A stretch of DNA of 63,764 nucleotides, counting the filler, from Choristocarpus tenellus KU-1152 (taxonomy: Eukaryota > Protista > Phaeophyceae): NCBI GenBank assembly GCA_964200185.2. It is 8 parts of 8 records of this genome, joined end to end, with 100 filler letters (N's around TTAATTAATTAA, not from the genome) between each part and the next. Parts side by side here need not be neighbours in the genome. Positions count along the whole stretch, not along the records: positions 1 to 17,938 come from CAXNAD020000605.1; 7 more parts are not named here. The stretch is one strand, 5' to 3'. A program made the translations under genes and the position numbers. The stretch's first letter is position 1. Every line of letters starts with the position of its first letter. The notes beneath the pieces were generated by a model. The model had not been told where the DNA came from, searched no databases, and worked only from the letters and a program-made list of their open reading frames with translations. Of the stretch, positions 1 through 17,938 are shown piece by piece.

Positions 1-1380
1 CATTCGTAGCGGGGCCCTTCAAAAGCGCCACAACATTTACAAAAAGAACTATATAGGCACTTTCTGTGCACCATTTTGGGTCAAACTCATCCTCCATAGT
101 ATGCTCCATCCTCAATTTTGGTGATTGGCTCTTTATACATGCTATTCATTATTGTCACAAAATCCTTAAAATATCACAAATATGCACTAGAGGTCTATGA
201 TCCAGACAAAACAAATTAATGAACCTCAATCATAGCCGACTGTTGGAAACATTATTGGTGTGAATCTGATGTGTGCTTCCTCACACAGCATCACATGCAG
301 AGAAACCAGTAGACCCTGGACATCCAACCCTTGTTGACTCGACATGATCAAAAATGGAGGTAAAGCAGTAATTGAATTTCTGGATCAACTGCTCTTTAGA
401 CTCTTCTTGCCTCTACTCTTCATTGCTAAACCAGTCATTTACTTGCCTGTGTTGTTCCTTTTGACAGTTACCAACAATGAGCAATTCTCTTCTACTACAG
501 TTTTCAAGGTTGTTTGAGTGAACTAAGAGAATTGAACTCACACATGCAAGTACATTACCTCATGTTTAGAAAACACTCACAAGAAGAAGAGGGGGACAAC
601 ACTGTACTACTTTCAAAGCCGAACACAATCGTTCGGGATTAACACCCACCACAAGAGGAAGGAAAAACACACCAAGGAGAAACACAGTTTAAGTTCAAAT
701 ACAAACATTTATCATAGTACTACATTACTGTTGTTTCATAGTCCAAAGAAATGGATCACAATTTCATATATAGAACCAGATACTAGGAACATCTACCTAA
801 AATCATTCTATAGGGCAGCAGAGAGTTTTGTTTTTTGAGCATATCCACGCCTCAGAGTATTGCAAATGCATGAGGGTTGTTTCGTTGCATATTGTCTCAC
901 ATGTCATTAGACGGACTCTGGAACCAATTCTATCTTTGGCCCCCACCTGACAACAAGCATGTACAAAGTGTAAGTACACACACAGAAATAAGTTGTGGTG
1001 TGTCGATATCTGGGCACCCTGATCCCTTGGTACAGGAGAAAAAACATTATAGACTTGAAAGTACTTGATGTACTACTGTATTAGTATTACCAAATTTTCT
1101 ATAAGCACAACCACCACACCCCATCCACTCACAGCAATTCTCGTTCAGATAAATGTACAACACACAACCCTATTGTTTTTTGCTTCTGCCCACATTACAC
1201 AATAGGGTATCAAATATTCTCTACCTTATATTTCTATTATACGAGTACCTCATTGGAGGGTGGCGCACACAACAAGTAACGAAAAAAGGCGCCTACTTTG
1301 TTTTGCCTGGAAAGAACTGAAGGGGGTTACCCCCCTCCATTTGAAGGCATCCACGCATTTTGGGATTTAACCCCTAACCA

Positions 1381-3770
1381 TCACTTCTTGGGATCGTCTT
1401 TTGCAGAGGGTGCGGAAAACATTCGTTTCATTGCCTCCACATCAGATTGGGAAGCCATTTTCGGTTGCTTGCTGCCCTTCCGTCTTGCTCTATTTCGTGC
1501 AGCCTGCAGCCGTTCCGCCTGACTTGGTGTCCTCCCCTTCAAGTATGGAATATTACAATGAGAATGGTGGAAAGGCGACTCAGGAGGGAGGTAGCTACTA
1601 GATGACATAGGACAACATCTGCTGTAATATTGCTGCCTGCTCTGGCACCCATCAGACTGTTCACATGTCCACTTGCAGATGTATGCCTATGTTGCTGGAC
1701 TGAGAATCTTGACTTTCAAAAACATTTGACCCTCTGCTTCAAATCATACACAGTATACTACAATACCTCCCTCACTGAAGACTGAAATTGATGCTGACAG
1801 CAAAGGTGCAGTGAGAGAATAACACAACGCAGTTTTGGCTTAATAAATCTTCCTCCCCTCCAACCTTTGTCATCACAAAGCACAACCCAAACTTTAATGA
1901 CCTTCAAATAACAAGATTCACCTCACCCTCGATCCCTTACCTTCTTAGAGCTGCTGTCCTGATCTCGCTGGAGCACTGCTACGTCTCCCTCAAACCTATT
2001 GCCACCAACACAAGACGTACAGAGTAGGTTTATATATTAGAGGAGGCATAATCTATAAAATTATTGTCATAATAACTTTTGATTCACACCTTTGAAACAT
2101 AGGGTCTTGGCACGAGCCAACCATCCTGCCCTACTATAAATAATGTGATATCCCTAAGATTGTGTTCCGCTCCCAACACTTGACATTGAGAGTTCTTTGG
2201 TTCCCTTCTTGCACCTTGCTTGGCGTCGCCTCTGCTTCAGTGCTTTCATCTTTGCTTCATGTTGCTTCCGCTTCATTGCCTCAAGGTCGGCTGCAGACAT
2301 TTTCTTCGATGACTTTGGTTTCCTCTTCTTCTGGTGATGGGTGATGTGTAGGGGGGTGGACCATTAACGGATGTAAATCTCAGGAAGTTTGAGCAACAAA
2401 GATCTGGCATAGTACAAGTGCTTCTGAGGTCCCTGGAATTCTTACGATCTGACATGGCCAAAACCCAAGACATGTTCCTCAGGACATTCCCACAGTGTTT
2501 TGAAACAGAATGTAGTGCTGCGTCACTGGAATGTATTGCTCAGTTTCACTTGTTTTTCTGCATGGTGTACAAGGAGCATGAAGTTTTACAGAAAAAGACA
2601 TTACTTCATGAAGATGTTATCTGTACCAAATAGAGTATCTACAGTGGTGGCAGGTCACATTATCACAAAAAGAGGTGATTACTCCTTCGTGACTTGTACA
2701 GCTACACATCTAATTAATGCCAAATGTCTTACACACTTCAAATAAGACTAGGTGAAAGCTCAATCTTGCTAGTCCAATCTATGACACCATACCACCCTCA
2801 CCTTTGGACTTCCCACATCCAACTTCACGATCTTGGACCTGATCTCACTGTTATGATCTTCAGATGCCAGTTGCTCAGCGGCACTTTTGGCGCTGGAAGC
2901 AGCCCCCTCAAGACGCTTGTTCATCACCTTACAAGGACAAGAATAACGTGAACAGTATACCAATCCACCAGAAGACGATTTTGGGGATGGTTGAGTTAAC
3001 TTTAGAAAGGGTGATACACAGAGGGACATTACTTTTCCACCATGCAATAGATCAAGAGTATTAAAAAGTGTGTATTGTCGGCAGGATATTCATGAGAGCA
3101 GAATTGTGGCATTTGATGACTCTAGGGCAGTGAAACCAAACCTGTAGATCGGAACATTATCACCTCCCTCGCCAACAACTTGGCAATGGCTGCATCATCT
3201 TCGGGGTTGGAAGCCTTGAAGATCTTTCGGATAAAATTGCTGATGCCGTGTCGGATGCGGCTTACGCGAGAGGTCTTCCTGTCTCGCGCCACCGTGGGGG
3301 GGAGGGTATTAGAGGCAAAGGTTGGTATAATTCATATGTTTAGTTTAGCGGCACCTTTTACAGAGCGCGCTAAGGAAGGCGTGCACGACACCCCTCTATA
3401 CTGAAACATCTATTTCTATATGGACAGGGTTGCAAGAGTGGAGCAGGGCAGGGAAGGTGAATGTCGACCTACATTCATCCTAAGCATCACCACGAGAACC
3501 AACGGCACCTGAGGCGAAGGCATATTTCCGAACTTACTCTGCTGCATTATTCCTGTCTTGCCCCGACATCGACAACCTCGCTATACCATGTGTACAGGTG
3601 GAATGAGCAGGGCATTGTAGTCGAATCGCGCCAGCGATGGAGGATACAGGCTTGGAACCAAGAGGATTCCGCCCGCCGAAGGTCACAGCTGGGTTCAACA
3701 CGAAACAAAGCCCTGGTGAAACCAAACTTGCGACGCACGCTGGCAACAAAACCTGTGATTTGAAACCCAT
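1381..3770 (-). CDS. Unknown basic (K/R-rich) protein, ~260 aa, probably plastid-targeted; 6 exons
   Basis: Hand-spliced exons 3770-3538, 3278-3164, 2927-2802, 2330-2215, 1995-1941 and 1518-1381 join with GT-AG introns in consistent phase into one open frame. The N-terminus MGFKSQVLLPACVASLVSPGLC|FV looks like a signal peptide with Phe at +1, followed by an S/T/R-rich transit peptide. No family recognised. Confidence 0.72.
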
Positions 3771-4474
3771 GGCTTCCAGCGGAGAAAGTACATCAAGTGG
3801 CCAAGGCGAAAAGATAGTGTTGAAACAAGAACAGGTTTAAAGTGCCCCCTTCCATTCAAAGTGAGCGAGAATTCCCTCGAGATCACATGCACTCCCGCAA
3901 GGAGAATGAGAGACTGTGATGGGCCAATTGTATTGTCATGGATGATGGTAGTGTTTATCCTGAAGTGTCCTATTCGTATTTCAACATGGTGCTTCACACA
4001 ATAACACAGCAGTCGCCCTTCACCCCTTGCTTAGGGGGTTGCTATGCATATCCAGCCCACCTGTTCTTATAATATCGAAGTTCAAATGAATACTTGGGAA
4101 CCTTGAAATGGACAACTGAGAGAGGTCGATGAGGACTTGGTGGATATTCGTTCAATCCAGTTTGATGTTGTGAGAGATGGACAGGTGGCAGCATGCCAAT
4201 ACCTATACTGAAGAAGACATTAACTTATTGTTACAGTTTCGAGGTTGACATGTGAATAAAATTATGTAGACATAGAGGAGAAGTTTGTAGGAATTAACTT
4301 CTCAACAACTTCAAGTATTAGTGAGAGTAATAACATCACACCACAATAATGACATATATACCCATTACGTACTACATTTATTGCGGTAATAGTTACAATT
4401 GTGATGAATAGTATGAAGATTACAAAATAGTGGTTTTCTGTGTGAATAAGTAGTGAGTTGTACTTAAAACTTGT

Positions 4475-7400
4475 ATGCGGTCAACGCTTTCTTTGAAGGC
4501 TTTAGTGGCTGTGCTCGGCTGCTCGGTTCTCTGCGTCAACCTGACAGCGAGACCGCTGAAACCGGTAATTAAGGCATTAGGAGGGGTCACGACTCGTCCA
4601 GCTTTACTTGCGAGGGTGGTGGGTACCCATCCAGGATGGGGTACCATATGGGCAGGTCCAAGACCATTTAAGGGTCGATGCCTATTCGCATCGCTCATCA
4701 ATGGTCCTGCTAAGGAAATGAAAAACCTGGAGAGACGCATCTACGACATCGCTGGCCGAGAATTTGATATCGGGAAGCCGACACAACTTGCGAAAGTGGG
4801 TTAAGAGTTACGGAACCCCACAAAAAGTTTAACACTAATGTTTTATTGGGGTTCTTTCCTCTGCAGTAGGGGCGCTTATGTTTTGGATTGAAGCTCATTG
4901 TTCCTCATTCATATTAAGCAGAAATACGAATGCCCCTATCGTAGGTCCTGTATGAGGAAGTGGGGGTGTCCAAGTCCGATATCGAGGGAACTGAGGTGGG
5001 AAAAGAGATCAATGTGCGCTCAAGAGCTAAGAGTGTCTCGACTGCCACTCTCCAGACCATCCTCGGTGCCCAGTCAGACATGCACAAGCGCGAGTTGATC
5101 TCACTTGTGCTCAAATGGCTGCAAGCTAATGCTCTCTCTAAAAGGGGGGGTTTCAAAGCATTAGGTGGGAACTTCTCCCTAGATGTTCTATATATCAGAG
5201 GATCATAAGACAATGCCGTCGCTAATGTGCCATGCTTCCTGAAGCCATGCTCCGACACTATCGGAGTGGATAATTTCCATCCAGTGCAGGAAGAACTTGT
5301 AGTCCTCGTCGTTAATTGCTCAACTTGTCCCCTCCCATCTAAAGATCTGTTCATGTCTTTCTGTAATAAGAACAGGAGAAAAAACATGACGAAGCGGGAG
5401 GTAGGAGAGGGGGAAGGAAGTGGCAAGACTAGCTAGTGCTTTGAAGTCACTACTTTAGCTTGCACTCTACATGCTGATACACGTACGAGAATAGCAAAGG
5501 CAACACTGGAGGTTTCATGACACTCTCCGCCACTTTTCAAGGAGACACACGCTCGTAAATGCCGACAAAGGATCCAACCTATAGCTCCCTGCCACACCCT
5601 AGTTCTCATTGATGGTGTTCTCACACACTTCCCCAGGTGCAAGGGTGGTGGACGTGCCGGACTGGAGGAGTAAGTTGATCCCAGATGGCGAGAAACTCCC
5701 ATCAGATCCCTCTTCCATACCGCTTGTCCTTATCGATGGTCACTATCTCATATTCCGGTCTTATCATGCGATGCCGCAGCTGACGTCACCGGATGGGACT
5801 CCTGTGGGGGCTTTGGTGGGATTCTGCAATGTGTTGAACAAGCTGGTGAGGTCGAGATTCAGGAGGGTCAGGGTGTAGACTATGAGCCCCCCACGAGGTC
5901 TTGATGGCATGTCCTTGGGAAAGATGCGTTTTTACGACTTGCACTCCTCGTTTCTCTGTGCTTGGGTGCTTCAAGTTCTGAGTACCACTGCGTGAAATCA
6001 AGTTATGAAATATTTCTGTTCTTCCCCCGTACAAAAGGATACGAGACAGATTCTGTGGGCTTAGGTTGGTTAGCCCAGTGCACAGTACACTTGTGTGTGT
6101 ACTCGTGCGAGAGTACTATATCTGGTTGATATCAATATTGCACTGCATGTAAGTAAGACTGGGAGGTTGACCAGCTCCAGCACTTCTCCCTAACTGGGTA
6201 CTGCTACTGTTGTGTTTGAAGTCGTGCTGCACTTATTTTTTTTAACAGGAGCCCTTGTTGGGATTTTCTTGGTTTTTTTTTAAGATCGCTGTTGCAGTAT
6301 TACGGAGAATAACTCTTGAGGTGAATCAATCTGTAAATCACAGTTTTGTTGATTCATTTTTGGGGTCAATGTTGTGCAAGGAACTTGTTAGGGGATGCGA
6401 GACAAATGACTAGGTAATGTTAAGGTGCTTTGGTAGACTATTGATGTGCACATCGAAATCATGTTTGTATATATTTGGAATCTTTAGTGGAGAGGTAATG
6501 AGCACGCAAATGATGAAGGGACATTAAGAAAGTTTTATGCAAACATTAGGTGCAGGATATGCTGATCCAAGTATATAGAGGTGGAGAAAGAATGGCCAAG
6601 AGTATTTCATGATGTAGTATTATTATATGAGTTGAATTACAATGCATTCCCATGAAGTGACAGCTTAGTACTAATGGAATAGTTTGTACAGTACGTGATG
6701 TGACCACTACAATCCATTGTAAGATCCTCTTTTTTAATTTATTTTTTCCAACACTTGACGCTACATACACTACAGTGCAGACATAGATCCAATCCAATTT
6801 ACAAAATTTCTGACGCTTCTGCTCGGAAAGCTGTACAAACAATTTTGTTTCCCCCCCAACGCCCCACCCCTTCACACCGCCATCTCAATATTTAGATAGT
6901 GCAACCATGGGTAGAGGGAGGTGAACCTGAGAGGCGAGTGGTGGTAACCTTTGACTCAGGGGGAGTCAACTTCCGACACAGAATATACCCAGGGTACAAA
7001 GGGGATAGAAAGGAAGTTCCAGAGGACCTCCATCCTCAGTTTTCCCTCATCAGGGAGGCATGTGAGGCATATGGGCTTAGGGTCGTGGACCAGTCAGGGT
7101 TTGAGGCGGATGATGTCATTGCTTCGTTGGCTGCTCAGGTCAGAGGTTTTTTGGGGTGAACTGACTGTTGTTTTTTTTAGTGGTTAAGTTAGGGAATGGT
7201 AGATGTGGTGACAGACTGACTATTTTTCGAAGATTTTGATATGTGAAAAAGAAAAATTGTCACTGACGCTTCCATGGTTGTGTTTCATCATGCAGTGGTT
7301 TCATGCATATATGGTAACTCTAGATGCCATATTTTGTAGTAGACTTGTGTATGTGTGTGCTGGGGGGTGAATACAGTATAATATAGATGTAATATAATAC

Positions 7401-10400
7401 GAATTTGTTAACACTGCTGCAGAACGCAGGGTCATACGCTGTCATTCCATTGGACCTATTACACATGACCGCTGTTGAACCAGGCTCTTCATGCCCGTGT
7501 TGCTCATATACTTGTTTGTCACAACAGTAACCAAGCATCCCTGCTGTGGAAGCAGGTTGTTCACCTGATTGTCCGTGGCAGTCCTTGGTGGTAAGGGTCT
7601 GTTGAGCCTTTGAGACAGGTTGAGTCTTGATGGTGAAGAAATGGGACCAACCACAAAGTGAGCTGTAGTGAGAGCTGTAGCAGGGTGGTGGCTGGTGCTG
7701 TGACGGGCAAGCAGGTGAACAGCCTGCTTCCACAGCAGTGGCACATGGTGGGTGTGGCAAACAAGTATGTGAGCAACACAAATGTGAACAAACTGATTGA
7801 AGAGCAGTGATGTGTGGTCACTGCCCATGAGAATAACAGGATATGCCATGTGATCTGAGAGACACAGGGGAGTGGGGAAGAGAGATTGTCAGGGCTGACA
7901 CTGCCGCTGGTGGTAGCGTTTTGTAACAGTGTGAGTTATGATAAGCGGTCAGTGACCAGGGCAGATCTCATCTTTGCGTTGTTAGTTGATTTTTGTGTGG
8001 AAAATCGTGTAACGGTCAGTTGTATAGTTGGTGCCTGTGTGCAGTGTTTTCTGAGTTGGGGTTGGGGTTAGGGTTAGGGTTACCTGAGTTGCAAGAAGTG
8101 CAATCTGTGTAACATGCATGCTGACTATTTCCATTAAGGCAAAGAGGTGTTTGACCTAGAGGAATAACAGAGGGCATTGTGAATGGTGAGCTTGGTATTT
8201 TGCTGCTTTCTTGTCAAGTTGTATCGATCTTTGTACTATTCTACCAATTGAGTTGGTGACTAGTGTGTGGTGAGAGATGCTTATCTCCACCCTACAGTAC
8301 ACTCACGGGAGACATGGGCTTACATCACTGTGCCAAATTTATTCTTACTGGTACATGGGTACAAATTCAAATTTAATTCATTTTCTCAAAAGGCAGGCGA
8401 GAGTATGATGTTTTTTATGCCATTGATTGTAGCTTTGATTGTTGATTGTTCTGGGTGGTAACAGAACAACAGAGAGTAGCACTACCGGGTGGATGGATAG
8501 ATCCATGGATAACATGAACAAGAGCTAGAGCAAATAGTAACTCCTCCTCCTCTCCCTCCTCCTCCCCGCACCATTTGTTATTGTATTACAGCTTGTGCTA
8601 ATCCCACCCCCTCCATAGTTTGCCTATCAATTGTGACCTGTCCATGCTGCCAGTGTGTGGCGGAAACCACTTGTACAGTAGTTCTAAGTTTCCTCAAGCC
8701 TTTTTTTTTCTTTTCTGGTGGCTTTTTTTGCAGGCTGTGACCTCAGGTAGCACAAATGTCACAGTTGTGAGTGCAGATAAAGACCTAGCACAGCTGGTCA
8801 CTCAGAGAGTCAGCCTTCTCAATGCCTACACAGGGGAGAGGCTTGGTCCAGAGGAGGTACACCTTGTTTGTGTGTTGGATGTAGTAAACAGAAGATGTGC
8901 AGTACTGCTATTGTGTCACTGTACTACTGTATGCATAATGTGTTGGGTTCAGATGAGGTATACCTTGTGGACATCATACAAAGTCCAGAGGTGCTGCAAC
9001 AGCAGGGGTTCTATAACTTTACCGCACTTTTTATATGCATGCTTTTTATGCCCAAAGGAGGTATACCTTGTATTGATGACTGCTTATTATTTGTTCAAGC
9101 AAGATGATAGGCAGAGAAATGATCTTGAATTGCCCTGGATACTGTGTTTTGTGTTCTCTCTGTCTACATGTGTACATATGGTGTACACTGAGGATGCTAG
9201 TTGATTGTTCTGTCTGTAGGTGTGTCACACTAAGGCAGTCTGCATCACTACAAGAACCAAGTGATCAATCCATTTTATTTTTTGTAACTTGACAAGATGC
9301 AAGCAAGAGAGGAAAGGAGGGGTGGGAGAACTGCTTCCATGGTTTGATCAATTTTTATTTTATTTGAATTATATTTTAACCTCTCGTAGCATTTGAGAAA
9401 AGTTGGTGTTTTGATGCTCTGATTGATCAACAGATTCATTGCCTTTCATGGCTTGTTTTTGAAAAAAAGAACTTAGAAAGAGCCTGAAAGGTTGCGTGGA
9501 GAAGGCAGTGGTATTTCTCAGCAATGGAGAAAAGTTTGCATCTTCCTAAATTACATGAAAAGCAATTGACATTTACAATGTTTCCCTTCAGAGATTTGGG
9601 GCAGATGCACAGTACTTCACTGATACTGCCCCCCCTTGATAAATGGGCAATTTTCAGAACTGTCGTACCAATAGTGATCATGCCACCCTCCCCCCTTCCT
9701 CCTCTTTTGAGTGGCTAGGTCACTTTGTGTTGTCTACTTTAAACACACTGGAAGGAGTAAGCAACAAAGCTAAGGCAGCAGTCATTTTTTGGGGTGTGCA
9801 TTATGCAAATGGTCAGATACATTCTCACATCATGCCGTTTGTCACTGTGACCTTTACCATTGCCACCTTTATATAATATATTCTTACTCCTTATGCACCT
9901 TCCCATCCCCACCCCAACCCTGACCCCCTCTCCGTAAGGTTCTCTCAAAATATCTTGTCCCACCCGGTCGCATAGCAGACATGCTAGCAATTGTGGGAGA
10001 TCCAGCAGACAGCATCAGGGGAGCAGATGGGTATGGTCCTGTTAATGCGGCAAAGGCAAGAAGAATCCCCTCTAACCCTCCTCCCTCCCTGTGGTAGTCG
10101 TTGAGGGTAGATCGTTATAATCAATGAAATTGTTTCCACAAGTTTTGTGTAAAGGTGAAGCAAGCCAAGGAAATTGAGATAAGGAAGGAGTTGGGTTTTT
10201 TCAGGTCATGTGTGTTTTTTCCACTCTGTTTTGTTCGTTTTTCGTTTGTGTGTATTCTGTTGAGGCTGTTGGGCACAAGAATGTCCGTTGGGTTCAATAT
10301 GCGTCTAGTCTTTGGAAGAAATAGTGAAGCTATAGTGACCAGAAAATGTGATATGTTCTGTCAGTCGTTTTTGGTCAAACTTCTTTATTATTTGTTTATT

Positions 10401-11707
10401 GTTTGCGGCAATGAAGGTGTTGGCCAAACACTCCACCCTGAACGAAGCTGTGGAGGAGATACGTCAAACTCTCAGCAGGAGGAAAGGTTCAGTGAGTGCA
10501 GCAGTAGTACGTGGAGTCTGCATTAGGGGCCTCCAGATAGTTTTTCAGTTTTTGATGTGTAATTTTCATCAAATTTGAATGTATACATGCATCGATAGAT
10601 GTATGTGTCGATTTTATCGTGAAAATGAAGTTTTATTATCTTAATAGTAGAGTTCTGCGCTCATTCAAATTGCCAGCATCTGATTCATTGTTTCAGACCG
10701 ATTTTTTTGTTATTCTGTGCGATCTGTGTGTACGCACCTCCGAAATTTCCTGTTTGTGTTGTGCATGGTGACATGTACATGTGTACAATTTTAGCCTCAA
10801 CCTCCTTCCCCCAGTGTGCCTTTCACTAACTGAGGGGCCTAATATATCTCAGCTACATCCCTTGCCGTCCTCACAAACATGTGGCTGTGTGCTATGACCC
10901 AGATGATTAATTTTAATCAACTGGCTATAGTGAACATCTGAATCAATTGTACTTGTCATTCGCAAGTCCTCTTGGTTCACAACTCTAGTTAGGATTTTTT
11001 TATTGATCCATTTGTTTGTTTTGTTTGATTGATTTGTGATCGGAATACTCTGGTTGAGAAAACCGATAACTGGAGCCAGGGAAAGGGAGTTTCTGTGGTG
11101 TTGAAGCCAAAGCAAGGGATATCAATGGTCTTCATAGGTTAGCTATCCAATCAGTAAGAGTGTTCACACACCTCACAATGACCAGTGTGCCATGCAAAGT
11201 CCACCTAAAGTTGTTTGCTTGACGGAGAAGCTTCTCAATCATCAAACAAGTATCTCGACCTTTACACATGAATCTGCCTTTCTGACACTCAACAAACCAA
11301 CCTCCATCCCAAAGGTGCCACCAGATCATCATTTAAACCTCTTTTGCTTCACCTCTGTCCTCTCCTCTTTCATGTTCTCCCTGCCTTGGCCTTTACCTCT
11401 ACCCTACTCTGCTATTAATATGATACTGACACCATATTCCTTATTGATTGAATCGGTGGGGGTTGAACTACCTTCAAAATGTACAACTAAACAGGCTTTT
11501 GCCGAGGAACAGATGGATAAGGTGTTGCTCGCAAGGGCAGTGGTGGAGCTGCGGACAGATGCCTTTCCACCAAGAGAGGTTGCCAACCTACTGAGCAATA
11601 TCGATGCCTTTGAGATCAAGGACCCATCAACTGTCCTGTCATTCCTTACCCGGCATGGACTGGCAGACCTGGCAAGGCGAACGTCAAGACTTCTCATGAC
11701 TGATTGA
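4475..11707 (+). CDS. Organelle-targeted 5'-3' exonuclease/flap endonuclease (Pol I N-terminal domain family) with an N-terminal Pol A thumb-like segment
   Basis: Exons 4475-4795, 4945-5120, 5376-~5420 (uncertain), 5637-5845, 6896-7138, 8734-8856, 9939-10055, 10417-10491, a possible small exon ~11057-11128, and 11495-11707. Motifs: LVLIDGHYLIFRSYHA, VTFD, FRHRIYPGYKGDR, GFEADDVIASLA, SADKDLAQLV and H3TH GDPADSIRGADGYGPVNAAKVL; all catalytic acidic residues are present. The N-terminus is hydrophobic and followed by an R/T/P-rich presequence. Confidence 0.9.
7461..7815 (+). ncRNA. Long intronic foldback, candidate (polycistronic) miRNA precursor
   Basis: Collinear inverted arms 7461-7581 and 7698-7815 with three duplex blocks (7461-7483/7793-7815, 7497-7523/7753-7779, 7541-7581/7698-7738). 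Transition mismatches in the two best blocks are G-U pairs on the host sense strand. Confidence 0.6.
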
Positions 11708-13048
11708 CAGACCAGTGCTGGTACTAGTGGTACCAAAGATAGGTCAGAAACAGGAAATAGGGAGTCAACCTTTGGGCGATAGAGACTGTAGAGTGGTGAT
11801 GATGCTTTGTTGTCACAGCCTCCCCTCTGTGCAAGTCAGGGCGCACTATTTATAGAAGAGCAAGCCAGATGTATTATTGTCTTAATTGAGGTGCTTCCAA
11901 GTATAGCATTCATTGGTTGTGCAATTGTTTTGTGCTTTCACATACTAAAATGGAAGACCTCTTGGTGAAGATTAGTCTACCCCTGTTTTGATGTTGTGCT
12001 TAAAATATATAAATGTTAACGATCTAGACTGGAGAAGGACTTCATTACTGCAACACTATGACGTACAGAATTGAATGGACGTGACCATCTATAGTACACC
12101 TGTATATGTAGCCATAACCCATTGTGATCAATATTTTAATTTTCCGTCCTAAGAAAGTAAACGGAGAGTTTCCAATCCCCCCCAATCCCCCTTGTATGGA
12201 GGTGTGATGTTTTGTAGCACAACTTCGTCTACAATGCATGCACTTCACCGTAATCATCGCAGAGGGAGAAAGGTAACACCAATAAGTGAGTTATTTGTCG
12301 GTGCCTTAGATTTTTGGGATTTCCGTAGACTTGTCATTATAGTCTCTTTTTCAAAGTGTTTGGTCATACTTCGTAGTTCGATGAATGGATAGTTCAAGAT
12401 GTGAAGGAAAAAACTATTGTTCATTTTAGTGTGTGACAATGAATGTTCAACAATAGTAGTTAGTGGTATCAGGACATGATCGGATTATATTCTACAATAC
12501 AATACACCTGGTTTTTCATAATATTAGTGAGGAATGATCCTCAACACATATTTCATTTTCTGAAGTTGTTTCAACAATAATAGGAAAACGTTTACACAAA
12601 ACCTTTACTATTTATTGTTATTATTGGCAGTAGGTATACTTTTCTCCTGGAGGAAGCGAGTCCTTCCAGTTGCACTGTGGTGCAGAGAACTAGAGCCATC
12701 TGTTGTAGAATTTCAAAATTGGGGAATCTATAATTTCATCGTGAAGAGGTTAAATGAAATAATGGGTCCTTGAATGTGTTTGATGGGGACCTCAAAATTC
12801 TGGTGCGTTGGGGTTTTCTAGAAATCACAGCTGTTTACGAGATACATGTGATCCCGCACAGGGATATCATAATTGGGGGGGGTTGCGACAGGGTAGATCA
12901 TGGTAAAGTGCAATACTAGTCTCAAGATATATCAACGGTGTAAGTGGTTAAATGGAGAGATCAGGATCCTTGTGTTCTACAGGTATACTTTCCATCCTCC
13001 AGTATAGTTGATGAGAACCAAGTGATCCCGCAAAGGCGTATTACAATT

Positions 13049-13225
13049 GGTTTAAAGCTCCTGGGGGGGGGGGGGTTATACACCAGGGTATCCATTCGGG
13101 CCCTGACCAGGAGATGTGCACTTACATCATCGATCCCACGCATGCAACCAAATTCACCCAAAAATCGCGACATGGAAAATGGGCCCCGAATGGATAGCCG
13201 CAACACACACACAGATAATTGAGCC
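13049..13225 (+). mobile_element. MITE family B, full-length degenerate copy
   Basis: Poly-G left end followed by TACACCAGGGTATCCATTCGG; right end CCCCGAATGGATAGCCGC...CAGATAATTGAGCC. Aligns with copies at 42835-42940, 44272-44381, 49740-49799 and 61209-61326. Confidence 0.7.
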
Positions 13226-15462
13226 TTTGGGTTTGGAGGACCTTGCGACAGGATGGATTATGGGGAAGCGAATGCTCGGGAAGGTAGAGGGTGTAAGGGG
13301 CCGATTTTCTCGAGAGGGAAAGAATACAAAGACCGGATTGCTAATCTTGTGTGAACAGCCAAATGTGCCCTTAAAAAAAGGTTTCAGACGAATATGACCG
13401 AGGAGAACGAAGATAGTGAGCCGAGGGAGGAGAAATGCATTGGTCCTGCTGGGACTGAGGATGATAGTCCTTGGGCGTAGAGGTTGAGAAGGATGTAGTG
13501 AGAGTGGTGAAGAGCAGGAGGATGTGGGCGAAGAGGTGGATAAGGAAATTGCAACGTGTGTAGAGATAATGAGCTTACATGAGGATCAAACAGTTCAATG
13601 CGTCAATTCCTCACTGACCCAAATGTCAATGAGGATGGCTTAGAATGCCAGCAAGACAGTAGCAACATGGGAAGATACATTATTGTCTGCTACGAGCAGA
13701 ATGCACGAAAAAAGGTCTGTGCTCTCTTAGCTGTTCATGCCTTCAACGTCAAATAGTTCTGTCAGTACCATCCATACTCACACAAGTGTTCTAACATACT
13801 CTCTCTACCCGTCTTTGCTTCATGCAAAACCTTCAGGTATGACTGAGGAAAAGTAAACGAGAAGTACTCAGCCTTCGACTGTTCTGGAATTACGACACTT
13901 TTCTAATCTTCGGCGATTCACTCATATTTCAAAGGATCAATAACTGAAGTGATTGGAGATTGTTGATTTCTCAATTGTTTGAATTTTTTTTACAGAATAT
14001 AGAAAGTTCCCTGCACGTATTTCTACAATACGCCTAAATTTGCACACAATTGTCAGCATCCCAAAAAATATAACCCTGGATACCTCTCGCTAACTTTGAC
14101 TCAACCGTTTTTCCCAACGCCGGATTTCTACCCTTTTCCAACAATATCCGAACATCCGTATTAGCATCACAACATGTGCTACCTCCAGAAATTCATTTTC
14201 TGCTCATACCAACAGATGCCCCTCGCCCTCAGCTTTCACTTCACACATTGTTTATCCAAATTGAGCAAGAACTGGAAAAGTTATGACCACATGCTTCATT
14301 TATCATACCTAATAGTTCCGTAAGATACCATTCATACATAGCTTGAAGTATTAGGAGTGATTGTACACAAGTTTTATTTTTATGTAAGGGTGCATCTACA
14401 ACTCTGTCCACCCATGATAAACTTGCTAATGAGTGATCACATTGTTGTGGCATGGCATTCACTCTTGCAACATGTGTACTACATTAATAATTGATCCAGA
14501 TACATTTCTACAACACGTAGCCTGCATTTGCAAATAGCACTGCCACTCTAGGTATGTTTTTCTCGTGCCGTTTCAATCATTTTTATACACAAGATACCTC
14601 CCCTGTTAAACCTGTCCCATATGTGTGTAGCAAGAGTTTGTGGACTTACGTAGATATATCTACCACAAGAGGGTGAAATACATTGAAACAACTGAAGGAT
14701 ACAGAATGGAGTGAGATAAATTTGGTTCTGGTCTAGTTGTGTTAACAATAGAGTTACACCATTTCAAAGAACAGAAGATACTACCTACTAGGAGTAAGAG
14801 GTAGTGCACAACGCCATGTTCATATCAAACACAAAAATATGACATGATTCTACCACACAAGTGCATCCCAAGATACGATTATATCACAGTCAAGTCATCT
14901 GCAACAGTACCCAGTACCGAACCATGGCTATTCAGTGCTTGTCATGCTTCTTACCATATGTTGCAACATTGATACCAGTGATGTTTAGGAATGCGAGAAA
15001 CAATTGTATACCCTGACCCCATTAAGAGCATCATGTGAATGTAAATTATACCCAGTACAACAGAAAGGAGCAGAGAGTGATGGTCCTGAGTCTTACTGCT
15101 CATGTGATTATTTTCCAACCCACAGGTACTCTCTGTTTACACTCTGACCAGTAACAAATTTGACAAGAAAAAGTATTACACACGCATAAATTTCAAGTCA
15201 ATTTCTAGCACAGGTGTAGTCTATTGAGTTGAGGATGCCACCATAGGAAGGGGATTTGCCGTGCTTCTTATGGAAAATAGTTTAAAATCTCTCTTGTTAA
15301 TAAGATAGACACACACCAGGCTGCAACAAGAAAAGCACCACATCACATCAGAAACTAGACAGAAAGAGTGGATTCTCTCGGCAGTGGTTTCATCCTTTCA
15401 AGGCAATCACCCCCACCCCTCATATCCACATCCCTCTCCCCACCCTGTGCTTAATGTGGTCT

Positions 15463-16587
15463 TTAGAAAGCGGCATCAGCAATGGTGACCTCGACCTCAA
15501 CTCCAGGCTCGATGGAGATGGAAGTGATCTGCTTCACAATCTCAGAAGGAGAGTGGAGATCAAGGATACGCTTGTGGATGCGCATCTCAAAGCGATCCCA
15601 TGTGTTGGTTCCCTCACCACAGGGAGACTTACGGGTCACAATCTTAAGCTTCTTGGTGGGCAGACGAACAGGGCCAGACACCTTCAGCTTCTTTTCCACC
15701 GCCCCCTTCTTCAGGTCAGCACACACTGTCGTGAACAGGGGAGGGGGGCGAAGGGGGGTTATCCGACATGCCTCTCCCGTTACATCAATTTGAGGTAAAC
15801 CACGATTAAACACAATGCATCAGAATGCAGTCTTGCAACGATGACAAGAATTTGATGGCAGTGGCACAGTGTCATTATTGAGTATGTACAGAAGGGACAT
15901 GACAATGACACCCTGTGAACTTTCTCACACAGATGAACAGGAATGCATATAGTAACACGATATCGGGATTGAATTAGAGAACAGGCTAGGCCTGCACAGG
16001 CCAGGGCGCAAAACTCTCGGGTTGATTTATGCTCACGGTCTTTTTCAGTTGGGCTTACCAAAAAATGGATGCATATCCAAACACACATATGGACACACAT
16101 TTAACTGAAGTCCAGAAGGAAAGAGTTTCCAATAAATGTGAAGGAGAGGAACACACGTCAAATACATTGCTGCTTGCGAACCAAGCGCATCCACAGCATA
16201 TCCAGAGATCTTGAGAGCAAAGTTCCCTCGAAATCTACTTAGTAAACCTCGGCATCAACGGGTGCGCGCTGCGAGTATAGACTCCGCCCTGACCTATGGT
16301 CGTTCGTTTTCTCTATTCATCCACTTGGCGCCTACAACACCAAACAACTATATCACGTTCAATAATAGACCATGGGCTAGGCTCTTTTGATGAGAGACCA
16401 TCACTTACCCTTCTCGAGGTTCTTGACGTTCCTCGATGTGAGGGTGATACGGATGCGGTGCACCCGCGCCTCCTCCTCACCCAATCCCTTGCCCTTGACG
16501 TAAGAAGCCATAGTTGCAGCCTGTTCTCGGACGAGGTGCAGAAGACAAAGGGTCTCTGCAGTAACCTGCTAGGCCGGCGGTTACCAT
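15463..16587 (-). CDS. RPS20: 40S ribosomal protein S20 (uS10)
   Basis: Exons 16587-16585 (ATG only; an alternative in-frame start is at 16511), 16520-16409 and 15725-15463. The protein includes [31 protein letters not shown] and [26 protein letters not shown]. Confidence 0.97.
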
Positions 16588-17698
16588 CAAGGCAATAGTT
16601 GTTGACACGTGAAGTCAGAAGGTGCTAAAATGGATGAAGTCTCAATAGCAGAGAAAGACGAATGGTCCGCGCCATCAGTTGATTGGGAATTGAGACGGGA
16701 AATCAAATACGCTACTAAGGGTGATAGAATGGAGTAGCACAGTAGGTGAGCCAGCTCCCCTGAGCAGACCAAAATGAGATTTAAACAGAAAGAGGGTGGT
16801 ACGGGATGCCTGCACTGAGAGCCGGATAACGTGAAGAGAAAAATGTAATATCTATATCTCGTCTACAGAAATGCAAGACCCAGATACCGTGTGTCTCTAT
16901 CACCCCGAAACCTACCTGATCCGCGGTGTGCGCTTGTAGAGGCTTTAAAACACCACTTCACGACCATTGAGTGGTGTTGTGGGTCTCCTAGGGATGGAGG
17001 CATGCCTAATGAACAAAGACGCCTCCTTGCTTAATGAACCATTCAACACTATTCTCCATTTTTTCGGGACTGAGTTGTGTATATATATCTTACATACATA
17101 TTAGTGAGAAGGAGCGTTTGTTGTCGCGGTTGTACACAACTGGAAGAATCGTGATAAAACCGGACCACCAACTATTATCTGTCTTCATGGTAGTATCAAT
17201 CTCAAGACCTTCGTGGCGAAAAGGCGTCTTGGGAAGCAAGCAGAGACCTTACTTGATGAGTTGACCACCTACCATGTGGTAGGGGGAGAGGATCCGTGTG
17301 AGGGATAAAACAGTGGTAGCAGGAAAAAAAGGGGATGTCAACCCTCGTTTGAGACAAGTAGATAGTATCTATATAAAATGTGTAACTAACTGCACAGGTA
17401 TCTAGTTCAAAGAGGGCCATGCATTTCAAGCTGGAGACACCTACCTGGCTGGTGGGGTACCAAAAGGTTTTACAGATTCTTAAGATTCTTCCATCACTCC
17501 TCGCCCACCTCCTGTAGCGTGAAAATTGAATCGTAGGGAACCATGTCCTAATGAACCTTGCTGTATATATTTTCTTGAAAAAAGTGCTACGAAGTGAATG
17601 CACTTTTTTTTGCATTATATATTTTTTAAGACTTGATTTCGATCTTTTCCCTCCCCTGATACTGACAAAATGTCATTTCGGCATAGGAACAATACTAA

Positions 17699-17938
17699 CA
17701 TGCCCGAACCTGCACCAGGGCAGGGGGACAGGTACGACTGCACTCTCCAATGGTAAGACGCCTGCACCAACTATGCAAGGGGATGGGCATCCCTTGCACT
17801 ACCGAGGACGGTAGCCCTTTCACAGTGGACAAAAATCTCCGCATGGATCTGGTGTTCCACGCAGGGGCACTAGCGGACGCCGGAACAGCTCCCTTCAAGG
17901 AAAAGGGTCTTCTGCTAGACGTCACCTTCGCAGAGGTA
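17699..17938 (+). mobile_element. Fragment of an RLE-type (CRE-like) non-LTR retrotransposon, cut by the contig end
   Basis: HARTC...H.PMVRRLHQLCKGMGIPCTTEDGSPF...LRMDLVF...GLLLDVTFAEV; closely similar at DNA level to ~47826-48062. Confidence 0.7.

Follow-up and report, generated by a model that had tools for sequence, protein, structure and literature searches.

The DNA analysed here is a window of 63,764 nucleotides from Choristocarpus tenellus KU-1152 (GCA_964200185.2), an early-branching brown alga. Positions 1-17938 of the window are the complete contig C605 (CAXNAD020000605.1) of an assembly of 164 Mb in 27,310 contigs. On the plus strand of this contig, at 4475-11707, lies one expressed gene of eight exons and 506 codons, as counted from its splice joints and reading frame. 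The protein that it encodes consists of a disordered presequence, the thumb subdomain of a family A DNA polymerase, a conserved linker of 35 residues and a complete exonuclease/flap endonuclease (FEN) of the type found at the 5'-3' nuclease end of Pol I.

A protein of the same length as the model, 506 residues, is public at NCBI as CAM9201306.1 (P0001), under the name 'unnamed protein product [Choristocarpus tenellus]', and an exhaustive protein search with exon 4 located this exon at residues 251-331 of the entry, matching the prediction of the model. In our searches the exons were used singly, and the joined protein was used solely in the form of this public entry.

Three public sequencing runs were mapped onto 4350-10300. 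Two of them resemble genomic DNA; the third, X3, whose library type is off record, was taken as RNA because its depth is biased towards the exons and its contigs carry GT..AG joints. The joints seen in the X3 contigs (4795>4945, 5164>5637, 5845>6896, 7138>8734 and 8856>9939) link exons 1 to 6, and one contig of 687 nucleotides spans exon 1, exon 2 and the first 30 nucleotides of exon 3, showing that splicing joins the exons of the thumb to those of the nuclease in one mRNA. A preliminary description of this locus, made from the sequence alone, had joined 4475-5120 to 5637 onward. The splicing of exon 1 to exon 2 and of exon 2 to 5637 is present in X3, and the end of exon 2 has to be moved from 5120 to 5164. 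An end at 5120 puts the junction out of frame, while the joint 5164>5637 sets the donor (GTGGGA) at 5165 and extends the exon by 15 residues, ...LQANALSKRGGFKAL. Exon 1 ends in ...PTQLAK, and exon 2 opens at 4945 with VLYEEVGV.... The stop that had been placed at 11707 is retained, as the codon 11705-11707 of a predicted exon 8.

In the 3' half of the gene, X3 reads overhang at 10056 and resume at about 10418, implying a GC-AG intron. Intron 6 (10056-10416) indeed has a GC donor (GCAAGA) and an AG acceptor, with the junction backed by the read overhang at 10056. Unspliced X3 contigs were also obtained over introns 2, 4 and 5 (5144-5664, 7110-8760 and 8829-9919), at 5-25% of the exon depth; these are pre-mRNA, intron retention or DNA carry-over.

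Domains of the protein

The module of about 100 residues at 76-173 is truly homologous to the thumb in family A Pol I of bacterial type, as the preliminary description had proposed. In CAM9201306.1, positions 12-89 of the DNA_pol_A profile (PF00476) align to residues 79-172 with E 2.4e-6. Exon 1 by itself matches positions 12-41 of the same profile (E 0.02). A phmmer search of the PDB with the last 34 residues of this exon gave matches to 30 Pol I chains at E between 5e-4 and 2e-3, each of them located where the thumb begins; the best was to residues 212-238 of a Bst Pol I chain (E 5e-4). In a tblastn search, residues 538-565 of the Pol I protein P0134 were 57% identical to the last part of exon 1, and the F-D-I-G-K-P loop encoded there corresponds to the F-N-I-N-S-P-K-Q motif of Pol I. 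With exon 2 alone, Pfam and a phmmer search of the PDB (flagellin noise only) produced no match to Pol A, and the ESM Atlas none that was usable; the exon is too diverged, and the signal needs either exon 1 or a profile.

Profiles built from the modules themselves lead back to the same subdomain. With a hidden Markov model of ten modules, full-length Pol I proteins of bacterial type scored 40-64 bits at their thumbs (around residues 480-650). With a profile built from 43 N-terminal modules (alignment A3) and searched against all PDB sequences, only family A polymerases were among the matches listed, always at the thumb: Bst/Geobacillus Pol I at E 1.4e-15, Taq at 6e-11 (463-540 at about 1e-10) and Klenow at 6.5e-10, as well as Pol theta (2e-7) and Pol nu (1e-5).

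Structure prediction, which the preliminary description had suggested as a check, agrees with the profiles. AlphaFold2 predicted the four thumb helices at 77-93, 102-112, 140-149 and 153-173 with a predicted local distance difference test score (pLDDT) of 90-96, the tip at 113-139 being poorly defined. When a model of the isolated module was searched with Foldseek, the top 50 matches were all Pol I large fragments, with a template modelling score of about 0.56 over ~96 columns. The model of the full protein reached a predicted template modelling score of 0.77, no more than a hint of a defined placement of the thumb with respect to the nuclease.

Residues 1-75, upstream of the thumb, are disordered in the model (pLDDT < 50) and have a hydrophobic start followed by a stretch without acidic residues, features that fit a bipartite targeting signal. 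Between the thumb and the nuclease, R174, G175, G176 and F177 of the linker are invariant in 8 brown algae.

The nuclease itself is intact. PF02739 (residues 210-377, 166.4 bits, E 5.6e-49) is followed in order by PF01367 (379-460, 48.7 bits, E 1.1e-12), both above their curated cut-offs, and with the Pfam thumb at 79-172 and the nuclease at 210-460 the reversed order given in the preliminary description is upheld. Among 51 family members D270, E320, D322 and D323 are invariant, and D214 (the first catalytic Asp), D346 and D348 occur in 90% or more; a G-D-P-A-D motif lies at 392-396. The nuclease domain was modelled with pLDDT > 90 throughout, and its Foldseek matches were M. smegmatis FenA (E 1.4e-17), a 'plastid-localized exonuclease 1', E. 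coli ExoIX, Taq and T5 FEN.

Tblastn searches of the contig with full-length bacterial Pol I proteins gave matches in the nuclease exons and at 4712-4798 (Pol I residues ~505-565) and nowhere else; no part of the contig matched the 3'-5' exonuclease, the palm or the fingers, in agreement with the earlier view that the rest of the polymerase is gone. Within CAM9201306.1 there is no PF00476 match past profile position 89, and the palm and fingers, with the catalytic motifs A, B and C, occupy about 100-381 of this profile. Having no palm, fingers or 3'-5' exonuclease, the protein therefore cannot polymerise, and judging by its sequence the gene product is not a polymerase.

Polymerase exons with PF00476 were found on three separate contigs of the assembly (C841, C2221 and C23878). 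The gene described here is a spliced nuclear gene, free of a polymerase domain and apart from the organellar polymerase genes. A search of the 164 Mb assembly found neither a second PF02739 gene nor a second copy of exon 2, and no paralogues. That the module was copied recently from the family A polymerase genes of the alga itself was considered and rejected, as tblastn of exons 1-2 against the exons on these three contigs gave only an alignment of 24% identity in the right place, at E 3.4.

The thumb-nuclease family in brown algae and diatoms

The comparison set comprised 302 fetched proteins, and most of the family members in it are metagenome or transcriptome proteins. The thumb lies upstream of the nuclease, with a gap of no more than 85 residues, in 76 of the 302, and downstream of it in another 114, which are ordinary Pol I. 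Many of the top matches in the exon 4 search had the nuclease 250-600 residues from the N-terminus. In one set, all nine N-extended homologues tested besides CAM9201306.1 carry the partial PF00476 match, three of them above the curated cut-off. Of 19 proteins tested with Pfam, CAM9201306.1 included, all but P0046 have this partial match (positions about 6-100) immediately before PF02739 and no further match.

The diatom members come from Thalassiosira pseudonana, Chaetoceros neogracilis, Fistulifera solaris and Nitzschia sp. Nitz4, and some diatom members reach 34.3-38.8 bits for PF00476; the Fistulifera solaris protein is deposited as 'DNA polymerase I'. Seven further brown-algal members were found (Discosporangium, Ascophyllum, Ectocarpus, Pylaiella, Laminaria and two EukProt entries), and MMETSP transcripts marked complete carry the same fusion of thumb and nuclease. 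The retention of the thumb by orthologues, which the preliminary description had put forward as a search to be made in ochrophyte proteomes, is therefore seen in brown algae and diatoms alike. An Alexandrium entry is in a common 90% cluster with the Thalassiosira protein and probably represents contamination.

Among the brown algae (n=8) the mean pairwise identity is 24% in the presequence, 59-66% in the thumb helices, 36% in the tip, 66% in the linker and 64-71% in the nuclease domains. The thumb helices are thus close to the level of the nuclease, and the module is therefore constrained like the catalytic part. Its most conserved columns are the F of F-N-I-N-S-P-K-Q, the S of S-T, the Leu in V-L-F and the Leu in L-E-A. 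The Y-R motif is conserved in the diatom-type members, and the modules are basic, with a median isoelectric point of 9.3.

In a maximum-likelihood tree (IQ-TREE, LG+G4) all 30 sampled family members fell in one clade with an SH-aLRT of 88.8. The simplest reading of these sequences is that the family likely had a single origin, before brown algae and diatoms split.

Two features of the diatom-type proteins were noted outside the conserved domains. Nearly all complete members (P0153, P0012, P0014, P0008, P0009, P0017 and others) end in a conserved acidic tail, ...P-x-P-E-D-Y/F-x-D-V-P-F, similar to the C-terminal tip (D-D-D-I-P-F) through which bacterial SSB binds its partners; no such tail is present in the brown-algal proteins, that of C. 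tenellus included. The N-terminal extensions of diatom members (P0153, P0015, P0023, P0012 and P0002) are long, acidic and otherwise of low complexity, with short conserved motifs such as M-P-P-T-V-S-x-Y-D and T-P-S-F-M-E-P. A search of the long extensions for other domains, such as a decayed 3'-5' exonuclease, gave no Pfam match.

Proposed function and alternative explanations

Stand-alone FENs of Pol I type are already known from organelles, and the plant and Plasmodium examples show that such a FEN is imported where the family A polymerase of the organelle has no 5' nuclease. Arabidopsis OEX1 and OEX2 are organellar 5'-3' exonuclease/flap endonucleases (bioRxiv 10.1101/2024.11.05.621957; Plant Cell 2025), proposed to supply the nuclease that is missing from the organellar POP polymerases (10.1101/2024.11.05.621957). 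Like them, the C. tenellus protein is encoded in the nucleus, stands alone, descends from the 5' nuclease of Pol I (PIN-like plus H3TH) and has an N-terminal extension. The paper on OEX1/OEX2, however, contains no mention of a thumb (0 occurrences) and interprets the plant proteins' N-terminal extensions solely as targeting sequences (10.1101/2024.11.05.621957). PfExo of the Plasmodium apicoplast is another stand-alone Pol I-type FEN; it serves a red-derived complex plastid and works alongside a family A polymerase that has no 5' nuclease (PMC11260460). It differs in that an insertion inside the nuclease alters DNA binding, and no polymerase-derived module has been reported for it (PMC11260460).

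Compared with bacterial Pol I (Bst, Taq, E. coli), both the 5' nuclease and the thumb are homologous, but the C. tenellus protein has them in reversed order, lacks the 3'-5' exonuclease, palm and fingers and has a modified thumb tip. The stand-alone bacterial FENs M. smegmatis FenA and E. coli ExoIX are the top structural matches of the nuclease part, but they are the nuclease alone. The red-algal plastid enzyme CmPolI (5'-3' exonuclease plus polymerase, PMC4166229) keeps the whole polymerase domain in the normal order.

A thumb goes unmentioned in the OEX1 preprint, the PfExo paper, the review of Moriyama & Sato, the family A 'encyclopedia' and the complex-plastid POP paper, and we could not find a description of a thumb-bearing, permuted FEN in the OEX1, PfExo, POP and family A survey papers or by further full-text searches. 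The preliminary description knew of no earlier account of the architecture. This is consistent with the papers surveyed here, but the architecture is not peculiar to this alga: it belongs to a conserved family to which annotation pipelines already give the label 'DNA polymerase I'. The organellar stand-alone FEN is known, and its thumb-bearing, permuted version is in the databases only as automatic Pfam hits and under such labels.

The best explanation of these results as a whole, to which we assign a probability of roughly 70%, is that the protein is a thumb-bearing organellar FEN in which the thumb acts in cis as a handle on duplex DNA. The protein would be imported into the plastid and/or the mitochondrion, and there it would supply the flap and primer-removal nuclease that the organellar polymerases lack, in the manner of OEX1/OEX2 and PfExo; by this analogy it would be their ochrophyte counterpart. 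That the gene is the sole PF02739 gene found in the assembly, and is apart from the family A polymerase genes, is consistent with the roles suggested in the preliminary description, a DNA-binding or polymerase-docking module and primer removal in organelles.

While the tethered 5' nuclease of an intact Pol I cleaves the displaced strand, the polymerase domain with its thumb keeps hold of the upstream primer-template duplex. FENs of the bacterial type bind mainly the downstream duplex, by way of the H3TH. The thumb grips duplex DNA in Pol I and most likely still does so where it is retained here; at a nick or flap junction it would let the nuclease hold, in cis, the upstream duplex, a grip that in intact Pol I comes from the polymerase domain. 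We favour this role because of the parts played by thumb and 5' nuclease in Pol I, the conserved motifs and the basic character of the modules. The conserved motifs (F-N-x-N-S-P-K-Q, S-T and Y-R) are presumably those that contact the DNA backbone in the Klentaq and Bst complexes. As to origin, the gene most likely derives from a Pol I gene that was stripped to its 5' nuclease and thumb and permuted on the way; the reversed order suggests the decay of a duplicated or rearranged Pol I gene.

Several points weigh against this explanation. The support from RNA comes from a single study, and the library type of X3 is off record. The PF00476 score of CAM9201306.1, 27.2 bits, is under the gathering cut-off of 34.3 bits. 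The presequence has no obvious Phe at the presumed signal-peptide cleavage site. FastTree parts the long-branched brown-algal clade from the diatom-type clade, with unsupported nodes between them, and the maximum-likelihood support that unites the two is moderate. In the thumb itself, brown algae have W-L where helix I of Pol I carries Y-R, and have thus replaced the Arg of this motif; diatoms have lost the tip, and among brown algae it varies (36% identity), so that the classic tip contacts may be gone. Contact between the thumb and DNA is itself something that we infer.

The main rival to the DNA-handle reading, which we regard as unlikely, is that the thumb is a protein-docking module tethering the nuclease to an organellar POP or another replisome protein, thereby forming a Pol I-like holoenzyme in trans. 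Plant OEX1, which has no thumb, interacts with POL1A and POL1B in yeast two-hybrid (10.1101/2024.11.05.621957). Within the family, the tip of the brown-algal thumb is a lineage-specific insertion, and the SSB-tip-like D-V-P-F tail of the diatom-type members suggests proteins wired for partner contacts. Other family A thumbs carry partner-binding insertions, as in the thioredoxin-binding loop of T7. However, the tip, which is the usual partner site, is the least conserved part of the module, and the best-conserved positions are the Pol I motifs that we take to be DNA-backbone contacts.

That the thumb is a functionless leftover of a decayed Pol I gene, a mere spacer between presequence and nuclease, appears very improbable. 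Its Pfam score is sub-threshold and its tip is deleted or variable, and both plant OEX1/2 and PfExo function without a thumb (10.1101/2024.11.05.621957; PMC11260460). Against this, two ochrophyte classes have kept the thumb, and it contains invariant residues; it is as well conserved as the H3TH domain and far better than the presequence, and its fold is predicted with confidence. An artefact, in the form of two adjacent genes misfused or a chance resemblance to a thumb, could draw on the failure of exon 2 alone to match Pol A in Pfam or the PDB or to match usably in the ESM Atlas, but it can be practically dismissed in view of the one spliced contig over exons 1, 2 and 3, the same fusion in complete-marked MMETSP transcripts and in seven other brown algae, and the profile match at E 1.4e-15 with which the fold agrees.

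Beyond the DNA-handle reading, we suggest with considerable reserve that the thumb, in other proteins merely part of a larger fold, might persist here as an autonomous module which, joined to the 5' nuclease in reversed order, lets an enzyme without a polymerase recognise the 3'-OH side of a nick or flap, or dock onto POP, and that ochrophyte organelles might in this way rebuild the coupled nick translation of Pol I from two proteins. If this were true, it would add an undescribed way of arriving at a structure-specific nuclease, as well as a rare example of domains permuted through the decay of a polymerase.

The removal of primers and flaps inside plastids and mitochondria in algae with red-derived plastids has barely been studied, and the known organellar FENs (plant OEX1/2 and Plasmodium PfExo) are plain nuclease domains. 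Brown algae and diatoms, both ecologically dominant, have a Pol I-type FEN that keeps one piece of the lost polymerase. This offers a concrete handle on how a stand-alone FEN locates its junction or its polymerase partner, and for protein evolution it is an unusual example of a subdomain kept alone and in permuted order. It also corrects a systematic mis-annotation, in which pipelines attach 'DNA polymerase I' labels to proteins unable to polymerise.

Other features of the locus

Table 1. Features of the thumb-nuclease gene, in window positions, with the evidence for each
Feature	Position	Strand	Evidence
5' untranslated region with short upstream open reading frame	4357..4474	+	X3 contig begins at 4357; transcript start there or earlier
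Exon 1, first part: presequence of ~75 residues	4475..4699	+	pLDDT < 50 at residues 1-75; 24% mean identity in brown algae
Exon 1, last part: start of thumb, residues 76-107, helix H and F-D-I-G-K-P loop	4700..4795	+	phmmer, tblastn, Pfam
Intron 1, GT..AG, 149 nucleotides	4796..4944	+	X3 joint 4795>4945
Exon 2: thumb continued, residues 108-173, variable tip, S-T motif, equivalent of long helix I	4945..5142	+	PF00476, AlphaFold2, Foldseek
Exon 2, end: start of conserved linker (K-R-G-G-F...)	5143..5164	+	Joint 5164>5637
Intron 2, GT..AG, 472 nucleotides; unspliced form also present at lower depth	5165..5636	+	X3 contigs
Exon 3: rest of linker, nuclease N domain from 5723, D214	5637..5845	+	PF02739 E 1.1e-11; joints
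Exon 4: core of nuclease N domain, D270, E320, D322, D323	6896..7138	+	PF02739 E 7e-24; joints
Exon 5: end of nuclease N domain, D346, D348	8734..8856	+	Pfam, joints
Exon 6: part of H3TH, G-D-P-A-D and G-Y-G-P motifs; GC-AG intron next	9939..10055	+	PF01367; joint 8856>9939
Exon 7	10417..10491	+	Start from read overhang; end inferred from GTGAGT donor; total of 506 residues equals CAM9201306.1
Exon 8: C-terminal nuclease helices, stop 11705-11707	11495..11707	+	Acceptor inferred from splice signals and frame; CAM9201306.1 sequence

The upstream open reading frame in the 5' untranslated region lies at 4400-4430, has ~8 codons and precedes the main ATG at 4475. Position 8692, in intron 4, is C in the window and A in all three mapped runs; either the assembly is wrong there or the sequenced material carries a fixed difference. 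The same intron holds, on the minus strand at 7320-7850, long antisense open frames of 135-153 residues that are rich in Cys, Pro and His and had no Pfam match, as well as two short repeats at 8048-8087 and 8539-8569. This content of intron 4 may be a repeat or a transposon relic. Farther along the contig, at 15466-15813 on the minus strand, lies an exon of a neighbouring gene for ribosomal protein uS10/S20e (PF00338, E 2.6e-23).

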